Shown piece after piece: positions 2,213-53,121 of a stretch of DNA of 64,000 nucleotides. The stretch lies in contig NIVC01000989.1 in the NCBI GenBank assembly GCA_002269645.1, positions 186,001 through 250,000 of the forward strand, in the 5' to 3' direction. Below the pieces are notes generated by a model, which saw only the letters and a list, made by a program, of their open reading frames with translations, searched no databases and had not been told where the DNA came from. The number at the start of each line of letters is the position of its first letter. Within the stretch, counting starts at the first letter, position 1. The position numbers were made by a program, and so were the translations under genes. Source of the stretch: Macrostomum lignano (Eukaryota).

Positions 2213-2520
2213 AAATCTCCCAAGTTTCCCAAATCCCCCAAGCTTCCCAAATCCCCCAAGCTTCTCAAATCCCCCACTTCCCAAATCCCCCAAGCTTCTC
2301 AAATCCCCCACTTCCCAAATCCCCCAAGCTTCTCAAATCTCCCAAGTTTCCCAAATCCCCTAAGCTTCCCAAATCCCCCAAGCTTCTCAAATCCCCCCGC
2401 TTCCCAAATCCCCCAAGCTTCTCAAATCCCCCCGCTTCCCAAATCCCCCAAGCTTCTCAAACCCCTAAGTTTCAGAAATACCCAAGCTTTTAAAATCCCC
2501 CAAACTTCAAAAATCTCCTA
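2213..2520. repeat. 18-bp minisatellite, second array
   Basis: Same CTTCCCAAATCCCCCAAG unit as 1183-1632. Confidence 0.95.
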
Positions 2521-2585
2521 AACTCTAAGCCGTTTTTAAATTGTGTCTTAGTGACTCTCAGTTCTGTGTAAATATTGCAGTTATT

Positions 2586-4125
2586 ATGAAACAAAATATG
2601 GTCTCCGCTAGCAAGTCTGGCCAGAGTCCCAACGCAGACACATTCGATGACCTGCCACTAAACGATACACTGAAACGCTCCATCCGTAACCATGGTTTTA
2701 TCGAACTGTCTACAATTCAAAATCAAGCTTTCCCTTTGTACTTGAATGGGGAAAATGTGTTTGTTCAGTCACCGTCTGGCACTGGCAAGATGTCTATGGC
2801 CGCAATTTCAGTTCTGCAATCAGTGAAACTCCCAAGTTTGAGCTCTACAAATCCTGACAATCCTGTTCAGAGTCGTACAGCTCAAGCTTTGGTGCTGACT
2901 CCGTCAAGAGAGTTGGCTCTATCTGCGAGATTCATGTTTAATGACCTGGGAAAATCAATGGGCGTATTGTGTTGCGCTTGCGTTGGAGGTATTAAGGTTT
3001 GTGATTTGGCGTATCGAATAGTTCTATTGGCGTTGTCTATCAATTATCCCATAATTATTTATGAATCGTTCGATCCCATTTCCCCAGCCGCGGGATCAGA
3101 AGACTGAGCTAGATGCAGGCGTGGATATTGCGATTGGCACCCCAGGCCGAGTTGAAGACTTAATAAATCGAGGATGGTTGAGCACTGCTCAGATACGATT
3201 GATAATCCTCACTGAGACCGACGATTTGATTAGACGAGGTTTCAAAAACAATCTGATTAACATAATTAGTCAGATGCCTGAAGGTTTGCAGGTAGGCTGT
3301 GCTTTGTTTAAACCTTAAAACAATATATTCCATTTTTAGTAGAGTCGCCCACCAAACTCATTAAAGAATCGCCCTCAAAAGCCAAGAAAGAATCGCCCTC
3401 AAAAGCCAAGAAAGAATCGCCCTCAAAAACCAAGAAAGAATCGCCGTCAAAAGCCAAGAAAGAATCGCCCTCAAAAGCCAAGAAAGAATCGCCCTCAAAA
3501 GCCAAGAAAGAATCGCCCTCAAAAGCCAAGAAAGAATCGCCCTCAAAAGCCAAGAAAGAATCGCCCTCAAAAACCAAGAAAGAATCGCCGTCAAAAGCCA
3601 AGAAAGAATCGCCGTCAAAAGCCAAGAAAGAATCGCCGTCAAAAGCCAAGAAAGAATCGCCCTCAAAAGCCAAGAAAGAATCGCCCTCAAAAGCCAAGAA
3701 AGAATCGCCGTCAAAAGCCAAGAAAGAATCGCCCTCAAAAGCCAAGAAAGAATCGCCGTCAAAAGCCAAGAAAGAATCGCCCTCAAAAGCCAAGAAAGAA
3801 TCGCCGTCAAAAGCCAAGAAAGAATCGCCCTCAAAAGCCAAGAAAGAATCGCCCTCAAAAGCCAAGAAAGAATCGCCGTCAAAAGCCAAGAAAGAATCGC
3901 CCTCAAAACTCATCAAAAGCCATCAAAGAATCGTCTTTTAACTTCCTGAAAAGTTCATCTAGCACTTTAAAGAAACGCCATGCCGCTGACTAAAGCTCCG
4001 AACCTCCATCATTTCAGGTGCTGATATTCTCGCCTACAGCTCCAGTTGAATTGATGGAATTATTGAACAGTTTGAACTTAAACCCAAGCCCAGTGCATGT
4101 TCGACCTAATCTGGACCGACCGTAA
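2586..4125 (+). CDS. eIF4A-like DEAD-box protein, N-terminal RecA domain only, degenerate motifs (240 aa)
   Basis: Exons 2586-2996, 3088-3291, 4018-4125, both introns GT-AG and phase 0. Q motif GFIELSTIQ, motif I SGTGKM, Ia PSRELA, Ib TPGR, II LTETD, III FSPT, then TAA. Confidence 0.8.
3341..3935. repeat. 24-bp minisatellite (AAGAATCGCCCTCAAAAGCCAAGA)n in helicase intron 2
   Basis: About 24 near-identical units between donor 3292 and acceptor 4017. Confidence 0.95.
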
Positions 4126-4747
4126 AACTTGATATCTGATTATCTAATCTAACTTTTTGCTCCAACCTAATTATTGCCTTAATCATGTCACATTCCCTGC
4201 TATTATGCAATACTATGGAAACAGCAAAACAGTTTTCACTGCATGGCTAATCATTCAGTATCCTTGTTGTTATTGCACTGCGAACTTGGCAGTTATAAAT
4301 AATATTTCCATCTATACTAAAAAAATTAATGAAGAATCTGAATGAACGCCGTTCTAAGACTTAATTACACGAGCAGAGCCAATCACTTGAAGACCTTGAT
4401 TTTGTCATACCTTGACAAAAAGCCGAAGCTGTGATGTAAATTCGTATTTTATATATTTTTATTCTAAAATTGTTTTAATAATTGAAAAATATACTATGCA
4501 AAACTTTTCAAGCTTTTTATTTTCTTACTAAAAGTATATGTTTTAGTCATTGTCTAATAATTTTAACTCCCTGTTCGGTAGACAAAAGTTTTTTCTACTA
4601 GAGTTTTAGATGTTTTAGAATGTCCAAAGAAGTTGAGAAAGCTCAATAATAGCAAAAATCTGAAATTGCATTTTTTCTAGCCTGAAATTCGACTTGCCAC
4701 TATTTCACTGTCAGCAATTAGGGTTGCGGTTAAGGATTTAGGTTAGT

Positions 4748-4985
4748 TTAGTGGTTGGTTGGCTTTGGTTGTGGTTCGGGTTGTTTGTGGTTCAGGTTGG
4801 TTGTGGTTCGGGGTGGTTGTGGTTCAGGTTGTTAGTAGTTCAGGTTGGTTGTGGTTCGGGGTGGTTGTGGTTCAGGTTGGTTGTGGTTCGGGGTGGTTGT
4901 GGTTCAGGTTGGTTGTGGTTCGGGTTGGTTGTGGTTCGGGGTGGTTGTGGTTCGGGTTGGCTTTGGTTGGGGTTGTTGTTGTGTT
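4748..4985. repeat. GT-rich ~21-bp tandem repeat (GGTTGGTTGTGGTTCGGG-type)
   Basis: Visible tandem units upstream of the TEX10 start. Confidence 0.85.
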
Positions 4986-5120
4986 AGTGTCGACAAGCAG
5001 GTGTGGGGGACCCCAGTCGTAACATATTGCTGCATACCCTTTTAAGCATTGACATCTCAGGAGCTTATTTCAGACATCATGCATAACGATATCTTAAACA
5101 AATATTTCAGCTGCCAAGCC

Positions 5121-8100
5121 ATGGTGAAGCATCACAAAAAGAAAGAGAAAAATGCCGACTTCACTAAAGTGCGCCTGAAAGTTGGTCGAAAATTGCCGAA
5201 ATGCCTGAATGAAACTAAAATCAGTTTGGCTACAGGTAAAATTGTTGTTCGCGGTCAGGAGTCCGCCGCTAGCTCGGCTGATTTGGCATCTCCGGCCAGT
5301 CAGCCACTGCAGTGGTCCACCGGCCAGGCTCTGTTGAGAAAATTGAGAGCCAGCCAGATGGACGAGCGAGTGGCCGCGGCTAACAAATTGGCAAGGTTCG
5401 TGTTTGGGATAAGTTTTATCTAAAAAATCCCCCTTAAAACGCATCAAAGAATCATCCTCAAAAGCCACCAAAGAATCGCCCTCAAATGCCATCAAAGAAT
5501 CGCCCTCGAAACCCACCAAAGAATCGCCCTCGAAACCCGTCAAAGAATCGCCCTCAAAACCCACCAAAGAATCGCCCTCGAAACCCACCAAAGAATCGCC
5601 CTCGAAACCCGTCAAAGAATCGCCCTCAAAAACCATCAGAGAATCGCCCTCAAAAGCCATCAAAGAATCGCCCTCAAAAGCCATCAAAGAATCGCCCTCA
5701 AAAGCCATCAAAGAATCTCCCTCAAAAGCCATCAAAGAATCGCCCTCAAAAGCCAATAAAGAATCGCCCTCAAAAGCCATCAAAGAATCTCCCTCAAAAG
5801 CCACCAAAGAATCGCCCTCAAAAGCCATCAAAGAATCGCCCTCAAAACTCATCAAAGAATCGCCCTCAAAACTCATCAAAGAATCGCCCTAAAAACTCAT
5901 CAAAGAATCGCCCTCAAAAGCCATCAAAGAATCGCCCTCAAAAGCCATCAAAGAATTGCCCTCAAAAGCCACCAAAGAATCGCCCTCAAAACCATCAAAG
6001 AATCGCCCTCAAATGCAATCAAAGAATCTCCCTCAAAAGCCAATAAAGAATCGCCCTCAAAAGCCATCAAAGAATCTCCCTCAAAAGCCACCAAAAAATC
6101 GCCCTCAAAAGCCATCAAAGAATCGCCCTCAAAACTCATCAAAGAATCGCCCTCAAAACTCATCAAAGAATCGCCCTCAAAACTCATCAAAGAATCGCCC
6201 TCAAAAACCATCAAAGAATCGCCCTCAAAAGCCATCAAAGAATCGCCCTCAAAAGCCACCAAAGAATCACCCTCAAAAGCCATCAAAGAATCGCCCTCAA
6301 AAGCCATCAAAGAATCGCCCTCAAAAGCCATCAAAGAATCGCCCTCAAAAGCCACCAAAGAATCACCCTCAAAAGCCATCAAAGAATCGCCCTCAAAAGC
6401 CATCAAAGAATCACCCTCAAAACCGCTCAAAGAATCACCCTCAAAAGCCATCAAAGAATCGCCCTCAAAAGCCATCAAAGAATCGCCCTCAAAAGCCATC
6501 AAAGAATCGCCCTCAAAAGCCATCAAAGAATCTCCCTCAAAACCCATCAAAGAATCGCCATCAAAAGCCATCAAAGAATCGCCCTCAAAAGCCATCAAAG
6601 AATCGCCCTCAAAAGCCATCAAAGAATCGCCCTCAAAAGCCATCAAAGAATCGCCCTCAAAAGCCATCAAAGAATCGCCCTCAAAACCCATCAAAGAATC
6701 GCCCTCAAAAGCCATCAGATAATCGCCCTCAAAACCCGTCAAAGAATCGCCCTCGAAACCCACCAAAGAATCGCCCTCAAAAGCCATCAAAGAATCGCCC
6801 TCAAAACCCATCAAAGAATCGCCCTCAAAACTCATCAAAGAATCGCCCTCAAAACCCATCAAAGAATCGCCCTCAAAACCCATCAAAGAATCGCCCTCAA
6901 ATGCCATCAAAGAATCGCCCTCAAAACCCATCAAAGAATCGCCCTCAAAAGCCATCAAAGAATCGCCATCAAAAGCCATCAAAGAATCGCCCTCAAATGC
7001 CATCAAAGAATCGCCCTCAAATGCCATCAAAGAATCGCCCTCAAATGCCATCAAAGAATCGCCCTCAAAACCCATCAAAGAATCGCCCTCAAATGCCATC
7101 AAAGAATCGCCCTCAAATGCCATCAAAGAATCGCCCTCAAAACCCACCAAAGAATCGCCCTCAAAACCCACCAAAGAATCGCCCTCAAAAGCCATAAAAA
7201 AATCGCCCTCGAAACCCCTCAAAGAATCGCCCTCAAATGCCATCAAAGAATCGCCCTCAAAAGCCATCAAAGAATCGCCCTCAAAAGCCATCAGAGAATC
7301 GCCCTCAAAACCCGTCAAAGAATCGCCCTCGAAACCCACCAAAGAATCGCCCTCAAAAGCCATCAAAGAATCGCCCTCAAAACCCATCAAAGAATCACCC
7401 TCAAAACCCATCAAATAATCGCCCTCAAAACCCATCAAAGAATCGCCCTCAAATGCCATCAAAGAATCGCCCTCAAAAGCCATCAAAGAATCGCCATCAA
7501 AAGCCATCAAAGAATCGCCCTCAAATGCCATCAAAGAATCGCCCTCAAAACCCACCAAAGAATCGCCCTCAAATGCCATCAAAGAATCGACCTCAAATGC
7601 CATCAAAGAATCGCCCTCAAAACGCACCAAAGAATCGCCCTCAAAACTCATCAAAGAATCGCCCTCAAAACCCATCAAAGAATCGCCCTCAAAACTCATC
7701 AAAGAATCGCCCTCAAAAGCCATCAAAGAATCTCCCTCAAAACCCATCAAAGAATCGCCATCAAAAGCCATCAAAGAATCGCCCTCAAATGCCATCAAAG
7801 AATCGCCCTCAAAACCCACCAAAGAATCGCCCTCAAATGCCATCAAAGAATCGCCCTCAAATGCCATCAAAGAATCGCCCTCAAAACCCACCAAAGAATC
7901 GCCCTCAAAACTCATCAAAGAATCGCCCTCAAAACCCATCAAAGAATCGCCCTCAAAACTCATCAAAGAATCGCCCTCAAAACTCATCAAAGAATCGCCC
8001 TCAAAACCCATCAAAGAATCGCCCTCAAAACCCATCAAAGAATCGCCCTCAAAACCCATCAAAGAATCGCCCTCAAAAGCCATCAAAGAATCGCCCTCAA

Positions 8101-11100
8101 ATGCCATCAAAGAATCGCCGTCAAAAGCCAAGAAAGAATCGCCCTCAAATGCCACCAAAGAATCGCCATCAAAAGCCACCAAAGAATCGCCCTCAAAAGC
8201 CATCAAAGAATCGCCCTCAATGGCATGAAAGTTAATCCCACTGCAATGCTCAGGTGGCTTACCGACCTCGCTGCCAGTCAGCAACAGCAGCAGCAGCATC
8301 ATAACCGGCCAGTGCCATTCACAGTGCAGGACCTGACCGAGTACCTGTCCCCATGCCTCCGCGATCCAGCCAGCGCAGAACTTCGATCAGCCTGTCGTCG
8401 TGTTTTCACCGCCCTGCTCACCTGCGGCGTTGCCAACCAGCCAGTCTGCCGGCCTGCACTGTTCCAGTCTCTGCGCACCTGTTGGTGTCACGTGGACGAA
8501 TCAATTCAAAACGAATCGGTACAACTACTCGAGTCCTTGCTAACTCACGCTCCCATTGTACTGTTGGAACGTGCTGACGATTTTCGAGCGTTGCTCAATC
8601 GAAGTTTGAAGAGGCGTTTAACTGCGACAGTGCCAACAGGGGCATCAGCGGCTGCGGCTGCTGCTGGTGCGGGTGTTGCTTCGGCTTCTGTGGCTCAGCG
8701 AAGTCGAGGCCAGTTGATGTCGCTGGCTGCCTGTGTGGCCAGCTTTGCCGACCTGCTGGCTGAGAACTACTCTTCTGGTAAGTGCCCTCAAAAGCTATCA
8801 AAGAATCGCCCTCAAAAAGCCATAAAAATCGCCCTCAAAAGCCATAAAAATGGCCCTCAAAGCCATAAAAAATCGCCCTCAAAAAGCCATAAAAATCGCC
8901 CTCAAAAGCCAGAAAAATCGCCCTCAAAAGCCAGAAAAAATCGCCCTCAAAAGCCAGAAAAAATCGCCCTCAAAAGCCAGAAAAAATCGCCCTCAAAAGC
9001 CAGAAAAATCGCCCTCAAAAGCCAGAAAAAATCGCCCTCAAAAGCCAGAAAAAATCGCCCTCAAAAGCCAATAAAGAATCGCCCTCAAAAGCCAGAAAAA
9101 ATCGCCCTCAAAAGCCAGAAAAAATCGCCCTCAAAAGCCAGAAAAAATCGCCCTCAAAAGCCAGAAAAAATCGCCCTCAAAAGCCAGAAAAATCGCCCTC
9201 AAAAGCCAGAAAAAATCGCCCTCAAAAGCCAGAAAAAATCGCCCTCAAAAGCCAATAAAGAATCGCCCTCAAAGAATCGCCATATCAAAAGCCAATAAAA
9301 AATCGCCTTCAAAAGCCATTAAAATCGCCCTCAGCAGCCATTAAAGAATGGCTTTGATGCCATGCAGCGCTGACGATCGTTGGAGGGAGTGTGGTCGGTT
9401 GTAGCCTAGCCGTCAGAGCGTCGGACTCACGACTGAAAGGTCTGGGGTTCGATTCCCAATCCCACTCGGAACAATTTGTGTCCTTATGAGCAAGACACTT
9501 AACTCTGCATTGCTTCAGTTCACCCAGCTGTAAAATGGATGCCAGGATTAGCTGGGGATAATTGAGGGTCCGCAATAGCTGCAGGTGAGCTGCCGGTTGC
9601 ACATCTGCCCATTAGCGCTGACTCCGTACTGTATACTGTGTACAGCGGCCCTGTCATTCACGTGACATCGTGACATCGTGGAAGATAACTTTTCCGTTTT
9701 TTTTATTATTTAACCCACCACTTCCAGCTTCCCAGTTGAGCAGCTCAGATGCTTCATCATCTGCTCAGCACCAGCAGAGTAGGATTCTCGACTACCTACC
9801 GGACGATTTCGATTTAAACAGCGCGGCTTGGTCCCGCTATCAGCTCAGCTGGAACTGCGACCTGGCGGCTACGGACTCGGATCCTACAGCTCTGGTTGGC
9901 TTGGCCATCTCCGATCTTTATAACAGCAGCAGTAACAAAGACAAAGACCTACTTGTCGACGATGCAGAGACTGGCGGCGTAGAATCTTCAATTAGCAGTG
10001 ATAGCAGTATTTTTGAAATCAATTTTGCTAGCCTAATTAAAGAGCTGTTTCCCGCTGAGTTCTCTGGTCGAGTTGGCGGCGTGAACGCTTATGAAGAGTT
10101 GCTGGCTTTGTTGAAGTGTCTGAGAAGCTTGTTGGCGTTGCATTTTGCTCGCACCGCTGCCGAGAGGCGAGACAGGGGCGGTGACAATCTAGTAGGCTCT
10201 GAGGAGCGGTGGTGGCAGTGTGACTGTTTCACTGCCGGAAAACCTAAAAATGGTAACATCTTTTGACACTTTGAATGCCTAAATAGATTGATATTGTATT
10301 ATGAGTTCGAAATTCTGCTGTGTGAAATCCTAGCTAGTCAGTGAAATGCCAGTTAAGGAAATTCTAGTTAGGGAAATCCCAGTCAGGGAAATCTTAGTCA
10401 GGGAAATCCCATTTAGGGAAATCCTGATTAAGGAAATTCTATGCGGGAAATCCCAGTCAGGGAAACCCCAGTTAGGGAAATCCAAGTTAGGGAAATCCCA
10501 GTCAGGGAAATCTTAGTCAGGGAAATCCCATTTAGGGAAATCCTGATTAAGGAAATTCTATGCGGGAAATCCCAGTCAGGGAAACCCCAGTTAGGAAAAT
10601 CCAAGTTAGAGAAATCCCAGACAGGGAAATCCCTTTAAGGGAATCCCAGTCACTAAACCCCAGTCAGGTAAATCCCGGTTAGAAAAATTGTTTATTTGAT
10701 ACATTAATTGTTTGATAGGATGATCTATTAATTGATCCACAATTTCCGCAGGTTAATTAATCATAGTACTTCCTTTACAATCAAACGTCAGGTCTCATTA
10801 ACCCAACCCAAACCCCCACCTCGGTAGGAAGTGCTAGATTTGATAGATTAATTTATTTGATAGATTAATTGTTTGATAGGATGATCTATTAATTGATCCA
10901 CAATTTCCGCAGGTTAATTAATCATAGTACTTCCTTTACAATCAACCATCAGGTCTCATTAACCCAACCCAAACCTCCACCTCATCTCTGCTCCAGACTC
11001 CGGCAGAAAGCGCTCCAACCAAAAGCGGTTCACACCCTGTCAGCTGGCTGTGTCAGACCTACTGTCGTCAGCTCTGTGTCCCCTGTTCCCCCTGACCGTG

Positions 11101-11868
11101 TCTACCACTGCGGACTCGTCGTCAGCCGGCTCCGGTCAGGCTAACAAGAAGCGTCGCAAAAGCCACGGCGGCAGAGACGCACTGAAAGACTTGGCAAAGA
11201 AATCTACGGAGCTCAATAATGCGATAGTGGAGTGCGCCCTGCTGGCGGGTCCCCAGCTGCAGGCCTGTCTCGGTCAGGCTAACACTGACGCCTTCGCTTT
11301 GGCCGTCTATAACTACTTAGCTGCTAGATACTCCAATACAAGATCTTCTACAGCTAAAATACTGGCTACAGATACTACTTATTGGCTAAATGCCAGTAGT
11401 CGATTGGTTTGCCAACACCTGGATAGCAGTCCTCTGGCTAGACTGTTTCTAGCCTTCTTTGCCGATTCGATGCGTAAAAATCGATTCGAACAGCCGGATG
11501 TTGTTGCCGATTTTCTAGTGAATTTAGCTACTTATAGCAGTAGTATTAGTAGCGTCTGTCGGCAGAGTTTGGATTTTCTACCGCAATATCTGATTGATCG
11601 ATTCGATGCTGCCCAGCTTCACTTGTTGCCGCCTGTGTCAGCTTCTTCTTCTTCATCATCGAAGTTGCTTAACAGCGCCAGTCCTGAGCAACAGTCGGCC
11701 TGTTCCGCTGTTCGCTGTCTTCTGCTTTTGCTGGCTAGCCAATTTCCTGGAGCTGAAGAGGCTGCGATTGCTGCTTGCGACAGGCTGGTGCGCTACTGTC
11801 CCGATCGGCTGTTGAGAAGGAGTTTGAGTGCCTCTCTAGCCTCTGTTGGCAACGCTGCTTCCGTTTAA
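5121..11868 (+). CDS. TEX10: TEX10/Ipi1-like pre-rRNA processing (Rix1 complex) protein, 731 aa
   Basis: Exons 5121-5395, 8254-8777, 9728-10252, 10997-11868, with intron phases 2,1,1 consistent and 2196 nt in total. The N-terminus KKKEKNADFTKVRLKVGRKLPK matches the Ipi1/TEX10 DFxKxKLKVG signature, followed by helical ARM-like sequence. Confidence 0.8.
5422..8220. repeat. 24-bp minisatellite (AAGAATCGCCCTCAAAAGCCATCA)n filling TEX10 intron 1
   Basis: About 2.8 kb, more than 110 units. It starts ~26 bp after the donor and ends ~33 bp before the acceptor. Confidence 0.97.
8784..9335. repeat. 22-24-bp variant of the same minisatellite (GCCAGAAAAAATCGCCCTCAAAA)n in TEX10 intron 2
   Basis: Starts immediately after the GTAAGT donor at 8778. 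Confidence 0.95.
9393..9665 (+). mobile_element. tRNA-derived SINE, family B, with CORE-like central domain
   Basis: tRNA-like head (GTAGCCTAGCCGTCAGAGCG ... GGTTCGATTCCC), then TGTGTCCTTATGAGCAAGACACTTAACTCT...CAGCTGTAAAATGG (9477-9539), which resembles the CORE/MIR-type conserved domain. Confidence 0.65.
10345..10685. repeat. 15-bp minisatellite (GGGAAATCCCAGTCA)n with ~120-bp higher-order unit
   Basis: Tandem units in TEX10 intron 3. Confidence 0.9.
10692..10983. repeat. ~161-bp-period direct duplication upstream of the TEX10 exon 4 acceptor
   Basis: 10692-10822 is near-identical to 10853-10983. Confidence 0.9.
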
Positions 11869-41200: not shown

Positions 41201-42104
41201 AGACTTCCTGTTAAGTTTTAGAGGACTCTTCTTGTCGTTTAAACAAAGGGAATATCGAACGAACGAACGAACGAACGAACGAACGAACGAACGAACGAAC
41301 GAACGAACGAACGAACGAACGAACGAACGAACAAACAAACGAACGAACGAACGAACAAACGAACGAACGAACGAACGAACGAACGAACGAACGAACGAAC
41401 GAACGAACGAACGAACAAACAAACGAACGAACGAACAAACGAACGAACGAACGAACGAACGAACGAACGAACGAACGAATGAATGAATGAACGAATGAAT
41501 GAACGAACGAACGAACACACAAACAAAAGAATGGACAAATAAAAAAGAATGAAAAGCAGTCAAAACAGAACCAGAGAACGAATATATGTAAAACGTGCAC
41601 CCAACTACCGGTACTATCTACCTTTGCAGCACCGTAGGCTAGCACAATCTTCATGATCTCGTTAGCATCACGAACAGCTCGACTCGCTACAGCTCCGTAC
41701 AACGCGTAATGAATCAACGATACACCTTCGAAATCAGTGAATTCGTTCTCGTCAGTCAGCAGAGTGGGATCCGCTAGCAGCAGTTCGCGTACAATCTCGG
41801 GAGATCCGTGAGACACCGCTCGCATCAGCGCGGACTTGCCGCGATTGTCTCGCATAGCCGGATTGGCCCCGTGTTCGAGCAGAAGCTTGGTGCAAGCCAG
41901 GTGATTATAGCCACAGGTAATGTGAAGCGGTGTCTTACCATTTCTAGCCCTAAACTTGATGTTGGGATCCACCATGCCAGCCTGTAGAATCATTCTGACA
42001 GCGCTTGTGTTGTTCTCTTCAAGAGCTGATACGAATGTCGCCATCAGTTCGGCGGCCGCGCGATCTCGGGGCGACCCGAATAGCCAGCCTCGAAAAAGAT
42101 CCAT
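38279..42104 (-). CDS. multi-exon ankyrin-repeat protein (~731 aa)
   Basis: Exons 42104-41622, 41207-40956, 40804-40245, 39457-38985, 38876-38716 and 38545 (or 38596)-38279, phases 0,0,2,1,0. Ankyrin motifs GKTPLHITCG, GKSALMRAV, GFTPTFWAA, GRTPSQL, GETWLTRA...GHLGLVQFLLSAGA. Confidence 0.78.
41258..41520. repeat. (GAAC)n microsatellite
   Basis: About 65 units in ankyrin gene intron 1. Confidence 0.98.
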
Positions 42105-50880: not shown

Positions 50881-52928
50881 TCTATACATTCATAATACCC
50901 AGCCAATTCAGCCTGGTTATGAAAGGTCTAGCTAAGGTAATTTGCAAAAATGCACATCTGAAAAAGACAGTATACTAATTAGATGACGAGATATTTATTC
51001 TTAATAATATAGTCAGTTACTTCTGTTGTTTATCCAAAATGTATTACTAAGTCTATTTTTCAGGTAGGCATTTTTGCAACTTGCCAAATCAGCCAGCTTG
51101 GCTAGGTGTTGCACATGTGTATATTGGCTAAATTATGCAATTTTAATCTAACAATAAGAGAATTAAATGTCATGACTACAAACAATTTTCAAGTAGCCTT
51201 TTTGCTAAAAAAATTAGCATATTTTTGCCCCTCACTGAGAATATTAGAATATACAGATAAATGAAGGTCAAATCCTAATTTAAATGCCTTTAGGTATATA
51301 TATATATTATGTATAATGGAAGTACCAATTGTATATAATATTTAATATATATTATCTGACCCTATTGATGCACATGGCATAAGTGTGCTAGAAGCCTACC
51401 CTAACTGCTCCATGCTTGCAGACAATGCTGCAATGCTCCAAGTGGTCCTCTGTGCTACACTATGCCTTTCTACCATGTTGTACCTCTCAGTCTCTACACT
51501 ATGCCATGTCATACCCAGGCAGGCCAGACTGAAACATGTTGGATGCCATCCACCAAAATGCCTATGCAATATGTATTGCAATCAAGTCATCCAAAAGCTA
51601 AAACTGAATTGCTTTTTTATTTTTCAGGTTTCTTTATATAAAACCAGTGACTACAAATCATAGCTTTAATAATAATTTTGACTAACTGATTGTATGTAAT
51701 TAAATTATAATTAAAACTCAATAACATTCAACTATATCTTTGTGGTTTAGTCTAGTTGAATGCTCATTTAGCTTTGATACAAAGTTGTCTCGCATCATTT
51801 TAACATCAATGTATCCATATACATACTTTTTTGTCTTTCAATATTAATATTGTTGATTTTTGGTCTTTTTATTTTCACTTCTCATTGCTTGTTCATTGAT
51901 TTATGAAATATTTATATACATTGTTATTGAATTAACAGTTTTTTTCATTTAAATACAAAGTGAAGTCTTTTACAGACAACCTATATTTTTTACATGACAG
52001 ATTTTTCAGCATTCTAAACAGTCTTTCATTAGATTTTGTCTTATAATTCTTCATTTGTTTGATGGATACAATTATCAGAATGAAAACTTTGTATATTTAC
52101 CTGCAATATTTCGCCGTACAGAACTGATTTCTTTATTGTCTGTACTGGTAGTAAGTGCAGGAATATTGTTAACTGTGTTGGTTGTTAGTTTACTCACTTC
52201 GATTTGTGAATGTTTTGCTTCAATGCAGGTCCACAGTTCACAAATCTATAGAACGCAGTGACATTTTTATTAAAACAGACTATTCCTTCCTTTTCAAGTT
52301 TTCTCTATAAAAATCATTTGTCTTACTGTTAGTAGGACATTGGAAACTGGTAATAGGTTGTGCTAAATTTAAGATACTTACAAAGTAGCATAACTATTTG
52401 ATAAGAGACCACGAAATTATTATCGATAATAATAGCGAGGCTTGAAAGTTATAATTATTTTTACAACAATAAGAAAATACATTTTACAGTACAGTATACT
52501 GGCTGAAAACAGCACTTACTTTATTGCATTTACACATTTAATTAGTAGCCCTAGCCGATATGTATCGAAATTAACTTTACATGGCTGTATTTTTAACGGA
52601 AATTCGCAAAATTGAAATAGATTATTATTTTTTTTGTCCACTAGATATGATTGCGGAGAGATTAAAACTAGTCCAAATTGTCTTTCATTAGATCAGTTGA
52701 TTCAAAGGCGTAGAAGCAACAACAATTTTTGCGTATAAATTACAAATAATCTTGTTTGCAACTGCAATACGTTTATATAAGCGAACTACAACTATCAGTT
52801 TGCTGGCTTCAACGATAAGCAGAAGTAAAAGAACTACCGGTTTTTTCAACATTCACTACATCCAAAGCAAGTTAGTTCAACTGTGTCTTTGTAAACGTTG
52901 GGTAATTTTTTGAATTACAAAAAAATTA

Positions 52929-53010
52929 CGTCGCAAGCAGGATTCGAACCTGCGCGGGGAAACCCCATTGGATTTCGAGTCCAACGCCTTAACCACTCGG
53001 CCATCGCGAC
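52929..53010 (-). tRNA. trnS-CGA: tRNA-Ser(CGA)
   Basis: 82 nt. Acceptor stem GTCGCGA/TTGCGAC+G, D-arm TGGCCGAGTGGTTAAGG, anticodon arm TTGGA-CTCGAAA-TCCAA, long variable arm, GGTTCGAATCC, followed by a T-run Pol III terminator. Confidence 0.97.
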
Positions 53011-53121
53011 ATACCTGTTTTGGCAGATTTATGTAAATTTAATACCCATATGGCGTTATTGATCTTGCTCACAAGCGATTGACAATACCTAAATGTAGTC
53101 GATGTATGTCAACCCAGGTTG

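Follow-up and report, generated by a model that had tools for sequence, protein, structure and literature searches.

Gene structure at the locus

The window analysed here is a 64-kb stretch of the Macrostomum lignano genome (contig NIVC01000989.1, positions 186,001 to 250,000), and all coordinates follow its own numbering. Near its start, on the forward strand, lies a three-exon gene whose product resembles the first RecA-like domain (RecA1) of the eIF4A family of DEAD-box RNA helicases and ends where that domain ends. The elements of the gene, referred to below as the DEAD gene, are as follows (SL, spliced leader).

2575-2580, forward strand: candidate SL trans-splice acceptor TTGCAG, 5 nt 5' of the start codon
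2586-2996, forward strand: exon 1, residues 1-137, with F20, the Q motif (2694-2720), motif I (2769-2792), motif Ia (2901-2918) and GG (2985-2990); donor AAG/GTTTGT
2997-3087, forward strand: intron 1, 91 nt, GT..AG, acceptor CCCCAG/CC
3088-3291, forward strand: exon 2, residues 138-205, with motif Ib (3139-3150) and motif II (3211-3222); donor CAG/GTAGGC
3292-4017, forward strand: intron 2, 726 nt, GT..AG, acceptor TTTCAG/GT
4018-4125, forward strand: exon 3, residues 206-240 and the stop codon TAA (4123-4125), with motif III (4030-4038), the final RecA1 helix and strand and 8 linker residues

Splicing yields a frameshift-free coding sequence (CDS) of 723 nt, corresponding to a protein of 240 residues. 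No in-frame ATG lies between the in-frame TAA at 2526-2528 and the start codon at 2586. Retention of intron 2, or read-on into the minisatellite that fills most of it, was excluded because the frame of exon 2 stops 8 codons past the donor.

The NCBI protein PAA50590.1 (BOX15_Mlig002855g2, labelled 'partial') is the window protein with one extra Ile in front, and it ends at the same stop. It is encoded on contig NIVC01003604.1 of assembly GCA_002269645.1, at a paralogous locus hereafter called L001, and the intron 1 junction given above is the one required to yield it. The GenBank annotation derives from a genome-guided transcriptome, assembled with StringTie and TACO on RNA-seq data and complemented by de novo assembly, in which experimentally mapped trans-splice and poly(A) sites served to divide the transcripts and TransDecoder was used to call open reading frames (ORFs) (PMC5730564). 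Provided that the PAA50590.1 model was made in this way, both splice junctions and the stop codon are supported by RNA, since the annotation was built from transcripts. We conclude that this is a genuine, transcribed protein-coding gene of M. lignano, its transcription being taken from the RNA-based annotation. The initial annotation of the window had described an intact spliced ORF of 240 residues with canonical introns and no frameshift, and indeed the same protein with the same stop is found in PAA50590.1.

The acceptor motif for SL trans-splicing in M. lignano is [T/C]TNCAG (PMC8629364), a form matched by the TTGCAG upstream of the start codon. The GenBank CDS is labelled '5-prime partial' and begins with the first complete codon past the AG of TTGCAG (position 10001 of L001, equivalent to 2583 in the window); this label stands despite the in-frame stop present in the genome at 2526-2528. 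From these features we infer that the transcript is probably SL trans-spliced 5 nt upstream of the ATG. The M. lignano SL itself ends in ATG, and trans-splicing between 2580 and 2581 would create a 3-codon upstream ORF (ATG TTA TTA TGA) that overlaps the real start.

Domain, fold and family assignment

Pfam recognizes DEAD (PF00270) alone in the protein, with E=7.2e-30 over residues 43-218 and profile positions 2-165 of 167; a weak match to CMS1 (E=0.006), under the curated cut-off, was disregarded. A phmmer search against PDB sequences ranks eIF4A-II and eIF4A-I first (131-132 bits, E ~1e-37), followed by eIF4A-III (128.5 bits), yeast eIF4A (~103 bits) and Dhh1/DDX6 (~90-100 bits). The homology to eIF4A structures (E ~1e-37) is thus far beyond chance.

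An AlphaFold2 model was made on P0001 (UniProt A0A1I8I7E0), a 97%-identical copy of the protein, from an alignment of 11 sequences. It shows the alternating strand/helix topology expected of a RecA domain, with a mean pLDDT of 86 and a pTM of 0.84, and only the first 13 residues and a loop at approximately residues 86-99, where pLDDT is low, are uncertain. This loop, encoded in exon 1, is a lineage-specific segment of 12 residues inserted after helix 3. A Foldseek search of the PDB with the model returned as best matches two structures of the human eIF4A1 DEAD domain alone (5ZBZ and 2G9N; TM 0.92-0.93 on the target, E=2e-23), followed by eIF4A3 in CWC22 and exon-junction complex (EJC) structures. 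In the alignment, the C-terminus lies 8-10 residues past the last RecA1 strand, at the inter-domain linker '...PIRILVKKEELTL' of canonical eIF4A.

Compared with eIF4A1-like and eIF4A3-like sequences, the protein shows 38-40% identity; these two groups share 66-68% with each other. These comparisons do not separate the eIF4A1/2 branch from the eIF4A3 branch as its closest relative (128.8 versus 128.6 bits, 38% versus 40% identity). A neighbour-joining tree of 130 RecA1 domains placed it on a long branch beside unrelated sequences, which we judged to be a long-branch artefact, and the tree was not used. Altogether, the sequence and model comparisons support a protein made of a complete eIF4A-family RecA1 domain and nothing else. 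This agrees with the initial annotation, which had recognized an eIF4A-like domain 1 only: Pfam finds DEAD without Helicase_C, and eIF4A comes first in both phmmer and Foldseek.

Motif states and predicted loss of catalysis

The conserved motifs, read off alignments to eIF4A, are found in the following states.

F20 and residues 37-45, forward strand: upstream aromatic residue and Q motif (GFIELSTIQ), kept, with Q45 invariant
2769-2792, forward strand: motif I (Walker A; AxxGxGKT), here SPSGTGKM, with the glycines and Lys68 kept and Thr replaced by Met69 (nt 2790-2792)
2901-2918, forward strand: motif Ia (PTRELA), here PSRELA, and PTREMA in P0001
residues 134-135, forward strand: GG, kept
3139-3150, forward strand: motif Ib, TPGR, kept
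3211-3222, forward strand: motif II, TETD for DEAD, with the first Asp and the Ala replaced
4030-4038, forward strand: motif III, SPT for SAT, with Ser and Thr kept and Ala replaced by Pro

The GKM, TETD and SPT states are common to the window protein and P0001. Taking as invariant those positions conserved in at least 95% of 39 canonical eIF4A-like sequences, 27 of 34 are kept (79%), compared with 32% identity at the other aligned positions; the lost ones include the Walker-A Thr (position 69) and the Ala of DEAD.

The positioning of Mg2+ in DEAD-box enzymes depends on the Walker-A Thr and on the first Asp of DEAD, and hydrolysis also requires residues of motifs V and VI in the second RecA domain (RecA2). 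ATP hydrolysis and unwinding are therefore very unlikely, because the Mg2+ ligands as well as RecA2, with motifs IV-VI and the arginine fingers, are absent. Based on this established mechanism, the motif states strongly suggest that ATPase and unwinding activities have been lost and that the protein is a pseudo-helicase. The DEAD-box features present are the PF00270 RecA1 domain, the Q motif and motifs Ia, GG and Ib, and those absent are RecA2, GKT, DEAD and SAT; as in pseudoenzymes generally, the fold of the enzyme is retained, judging by the model, and catalytic residues are lost. The conserved adenine-recognition residues, P-loop Lys and RNA-contact loops could mean that some contact with nucleotide or RNA persists, or could be conserved for structural reasons alone. 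The alignments bear out the initial reading of the motifs (TETD for DEAD, SPT for SAT, GKM for GKT, and retained Q, Ia and Ib motifs), with the same changes in P0001, and the pseudo-enzyme predicted from them also stands, given that the motif changes and the missing RecA2 make hydrolysis very unlikely by the known mechanism.

Absence of the second RecA domain

What defines a DEAD-box protein is its pair of RecA domains, which close on ATP and RNA like a clamp. The 240-residue protein gives no Pfam match to Helicase_C. When 151 DEAD-box proteins, mostly full-length, were compared with the 64-kb window by tblastn, matches were confined to 2500-4000 on the forward strand. A helicase-C hidden Markov model (HMM), built from 31 of these 151 proteins, matched only exon 3 in the six frames of the window, through its overlap with the end of RecA1 (15 bits), and likewise only the exon-3 overlap in the six frames of L001. 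As a positive control, canonical helicase-C pieces of 40 residues scored 29-63 bits, a lenient test in that the control protein was possibly in the training set of the HMM. The spacer before the next gene (4126-5110) contains no helicase-C remnant detectable by tblastn or the HMM.

These blank searches across 64 kb and in L001 agree with the initial annotation, which had seen no helicase-C exon before the downstream TEX10 gene. It had also named a way in which it could be wrong, namely transcripts using a weak GTAAAA donor at ~4122 to reach helicase-C exons. Such a read-on is effectively refuted within the 64 kb, because there is no downstream helicase-C exon for it to reach, and the GenBank model ends at the TAA.

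Gene copies and recent evolution

Three paralogs exist for approximately 85% of the M. lignano genome, with a divergence of 2.2% overall and 1.1% in coding sequence (PMC10733133). In agreement with this three-paralog picture, at least three near-identical copies of the DEAD gene are known, namely those of the window and of L001 and the one behind P0001, whose protein has 240 residues and is 97% identical to that of the window. Close database proteins come only from M. lignano. The truncation is common to all three copies and therefore older than their divergence.

The comparison between the window and L001 gives a mosaic. The unique sequence at 2516-4017 is 100% identical, introns included, to L001 9934-11771, whereas identity falls to 97.5% in the 3' flank and 94.2% in the upstream region, a pattern suggestive of recent homogenisation of this tract between subgenome copies, in the manner of gene conversion. 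Intron 2 is longer in L001 by 14 repeat units (336 nt). In exon 3, there are four differences between the two loci (4062, 4065, 4080 and 4119), all of them third-position synonymous (P=0.004-0.01 under neutrality). On the other side, P0001 carries 7 amino-acid changes, two of them in motif Ia, and 58% of ORFs of this size stay open in a neutral simulation at 2.2% divergence, so three intact copies are weak evidence of selection. Recent constraint on the gene is equivocal.

Long-term divergence and lineage restriction

Over the longer term, the picture is different. In a neutral simulation run to 40% amino-acid identity, with indels ignored, only 0.07% of replicates remained free of stops. This value, together with the skew of conservation toward invariant positions, indicates that the reading frame was under selection through most of its divergence from eIF4A. 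The initial annotation had considered a decaying duplicate as the alternative to a functional gene; the ORF, intact at 38-40% identity with 27 of 34 invariant positions kept, speaks against decay in the long term.

With HMMER, 1.84 billion cluster representatives were searched exhaustively; apart from P0001, no match exceeded 42% identity, and none of the 80 best HMMER matches tabulated has the GKM/TETD/SPT combination. A search of 90% clusters gave no ortholog at 50-90% identity.

Genomic neighbourhood and repeats

The remainder of the window contains the following features, among them several families of tandem repeats around and within the gene.

1183-1628 and 2213-2515: 18-bp tandem arrays (AGCTTCCCAAATCCCCCA) 5' of the DEAD gene; 70 bp separate the end of the second from the ATG
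3363-3908: 24-bp minisatellite (AAAGAATCGCCCTCAAAAGCCA..), 22.8 copies, most of intron 2, open in all three forward frames
4126-5110, forward strand: 3' flank and spacer up to the TEX10/Ipi1-like gene
4765-4979: 16-bp tandem array in this spacer
5121-11868, forward strand: TEX10/Ipi1-like multi-exon gene, ATG at 5121
5422-8220 and 8784-9349: 24-bp minisatellite of the same family (AAAGAATCGCCCTCAAAAGCCA) in introns of the TEX10/Ipi1-like gene, 116.7 copies and a 23-bp variant array
41211-42104, reverse strand: ankyrin-repeat ORF (Pfam Ank_2, E=2e-17)
52928-53011, reverse strand: tRNA-Ser (anticodon CGA), found by ARAGORN and Rfam

The next gene downstream had been identified as TEX10 in the initial annotation. 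Its first exon (5121-5396) resembles, although weakly (E=0.0012 and 0.04), the N-terminal part of IPI1/TEX10 as present in solved pre-60S structures, in line with that identification; three ORF-sized pieces of the gene (5121-5396, 9670-10266 and 11050-11868) gave no Pfam match. The two genes are on the same strand, 985 bp apart, or ~770 bp when the tandem array is subtracted, and may form an operon by the criteria of PMC8629364. As in the DEAD gene, an SL-type acceptor of the form [T/C]TNCAG occurs at 5105-5110, a few nt before the ATG of the TEX10/Ipi1-like gene.

Upstream of the DEAD gene, an open frame at 1102-1872 on the forward strand looks like the last exon of another same-strand gene. 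The tRNA-Ser gene directly follows an AT-rich stretch at 48-52 kb (GC ~0.30).

Relation to known proteins

The closest known proteins are eIF4A1, eIF4A2 and eIF4A3, minimal DEAD-box helicases of translation initiation and the EJC, which give the best sequence and fold match over the whole 240 residues. The window protein shares with them the domain boundaries, the Q motif, GxGK, motifs Ia, GG and Ib, an RGF after motif II, and the Ser and Thr of motif III. It differs from them in its identity of only 38-40%, the absence of RecA2, the GKM/TETD/SPT motifs and the 12-residue loop after helix 3. The ORF is already public as an 'RNA helicase' or hypothetical protein, and what is new here is the reading of its architecture and motifs.

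Isolated RecA1 domains have been studied as recombinant fragments of eIF4A (2G9N, 1QDE/1QVA and 3BOR), which have the same polypeptide extent and fold alone, and nucleotide-bound (AMP or ADP) PDB entries exist for related DEAD-box N-terminal domains. Because isolated RecA1 fragments fold and related domains bind AMP or ADP, a natural stand-alone RecA1 is physically plausible. Unlike the window protein, however, these recombinant domains were cut in the laboratory from active enzymes and have GKT, DEAD and SAT intact.

Our literature search found no described natural RecA1-only DEAD-box protein, and Utp25 as the only pseudohelicase precedent. Utp25 functions without catalysis, keeps both RecA-like domains, is conserved across eukaryotes and belongs to a known complex. 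This protein of the small-subunit (SSU) processome, also called Def, is presented as a DEAD-box-like pseudohelicase in the title of its report, the abstract of which mentions sequence similarity to helicases (PMC9539457). By analogy, Utp25 may serve as a precedent for helicase-like proteins that persist as structural or binding modules; the window protein differs from it in having one domain and in being restricted to one lineage.

Two further long-branch eIF4A-like sequences with altered motifs resemble the window protein in these respects. P0044 is an intronless eIF4A-like ORF of 218 residues on the Logan contig L002 (1024-1680; SRR32051687) that ends at the RecA1 boundary, with DEAD intact, GKS in motif I and TPT in motif III; the ORF that follows it on L002 is presumably importin-like, judging from its first residues. 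P0044 is apparently a second, independent case of an eIF4A-like protein limited to RecA1. P0016, from the metagenome SRR3990167, is a two-domain eIF4A-like protein of 395 residues with DDVD, SST and PDRCLG and altered motifs V and VI, and is a candidate pseudo-helicase offshoot of eIF4A. A common ancestry of the window protein with P0016, P0044 and P0146, suggested by a 'GWL' before motif II, was considered and rejected, as their identity to it (34-35%) is lower than that of canonical eIF4A (38-40%).

Proposed role and alternative explanations

The explanation towards which we lean, with modest confidence, is that the gene encodes an eIF4A paralog reduced to RecA1, lineage-restricted, transcribed and catalytically dead, whose action, if any, would be by binding. 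It would descend from the eIF4A branch of the DEAD-box helicases, with only the first RecA-like domain remaining. This domain would still fold, and without RecA2 and the Mg2+ ligands it would be expected neither to close on ATP and RNA nor to hydrolyse or unwind. It may instead be a non-enzymatic binding module that engages the proteins normally in contact with the RecA1 face of eIF4A or eIF4A3, or that binds RNA or nucleotide weakly. Such a module would presumably act as a competitor or an adaptor, the identity of its partner being speculative; a decoy or adaptor role towards MIF4G/MA3 partners, as suggested in the initial annotation, although hypothetical, is plausible and the most natural mechanism.

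Several observations weigh against this explanation. P0001 differs from the window protein at 7 of 240 residues (S9I, Q95L, S106T, L109M, R115S, F116C and I197T), two of these changes fall in motif Ia, and the total exceeds the 1.1% coding-nucleotide divergence of the paralogs, which hints at relaxed constraint. The identity of exons 1 and 2 between the window and L001 says nothing about selection, because the introns are equally identical. Part or much of the ORF maintenance may predate the loss of RecA2. Moreover, database searches found no ortholog in another species, and the gene identifier Mlig002855, looked up for expression, is absent from the supplements of PMC5816591, PMC5730564, PMC7336406 and PMC12896417.

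The main alternative is a transcribed relic, a possible account that we consider distinctly less probable. An eIF4A paralog, once full-length and already divergent, would have been deprived of its 3' half by a deletion or rearrangement that preceded the recent triplication, and the remaining 5' half would be functionless and drifting slowly, perhaps still transcribed only through a polycistronic unit. The changes in P0001, including those in motif Ia, when set against a paralog divergence of 1.1% coding and 2.2% overall, argue for such a relic, as do the neutral expectation of 58% intact ORFs, by which three intact copies prove little, and the introns that are as identical as exons 1 and 2. 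The M. lignano genome is also rich in rearrangements and indels (PMC10733133), and with close same-strand genes carrying SL-type acceptors, transcription need not mean function. Nevertheless, the stop lies exactly in the inter-domain linker and leaves a complete, confidently folding domain, the truncation occurs in all three copies with no helicase-C remnant downstream in the window or L001, and the four exon-3 differences are all synonymous. In addition, the losses at invariant positions fall partly on catalytic motifs while the Q motif, the P-loop Lys, Ia, GG and Ib persist, a pattern that differs from uniform decay.

At the other extreme, a stand-alone RecA1 regulator maintained by selection would mimic the N-terminal face of eIF4A or eIF4A3 and titrate a partner, thereby tuning translation initiation or EJC assembly. 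We regard this stronger version as doubtful. Speculative targets of such titration include an MA3 protein of the PDCD4 type, the secondary eIF4G HEAT1 interface, CWC22 and CASC3, and the half-helicase may be expressed together with TEX10/Ipi1, a ribosome-biogenesis factor, from one operon. To our knowledge, no single-domain pseudo-helicase regulator of DEAD-box origin has been described so far, and this one, if real, would be the first. A split helicase, in which a RecA2 encoded elsewhere complements the RecA1 protein in trans to give an RNA clamp or weak ATPase, appears very unlikely. The conserved Ia, GG, Ib, Q motif and P-loop would make sense if RNA and nucleotide were still bound, and the genome is highly rearranged (PMC10733133), but the 64-kb window and L001 are devoid of helicase-C sequence, and with both Mg2+ ligands gone (the Walker-A Thr and the first Asp of DEAD) hydrolysis would be crippled even with a partner. 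Hardest of all to credit is an artefact of annotation or assembly, by which the true gene would run on, through the GTAAAA at 4122 or across an assembly gap, into missing or misplaced helicase-C exons. The genome is repeat-rich and the length of the intron 2 minisatellite varies between loci, which leaves some room for it; however, the same C-terminus is given by three separate sources (the window, the Mlig_3_7 contig NIVC01003604.1 and the sequence behind A0A1I8I7E0), the transcript-built gene model ends at the same TAA, neither strand of the ~60 kb downstream contains helicase-C sequence, and an unrelated same-strand gene begins 1 kb downstream.

Significance

M. lignano is amenable to RNA interference by soaking. 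Transgenesis is established in this species as well (PMC5730564). With both tools available, the choice between a binding module and a relic can be directly tested. If the gene is a relic, it would be one of many truncated duplicates in a rearranged neopolyploid genome. If it has been kept by selection, the RecA1 surface alone would be a useful module, and the protein would represent a new type of architecture among the few pseudo-helicases.

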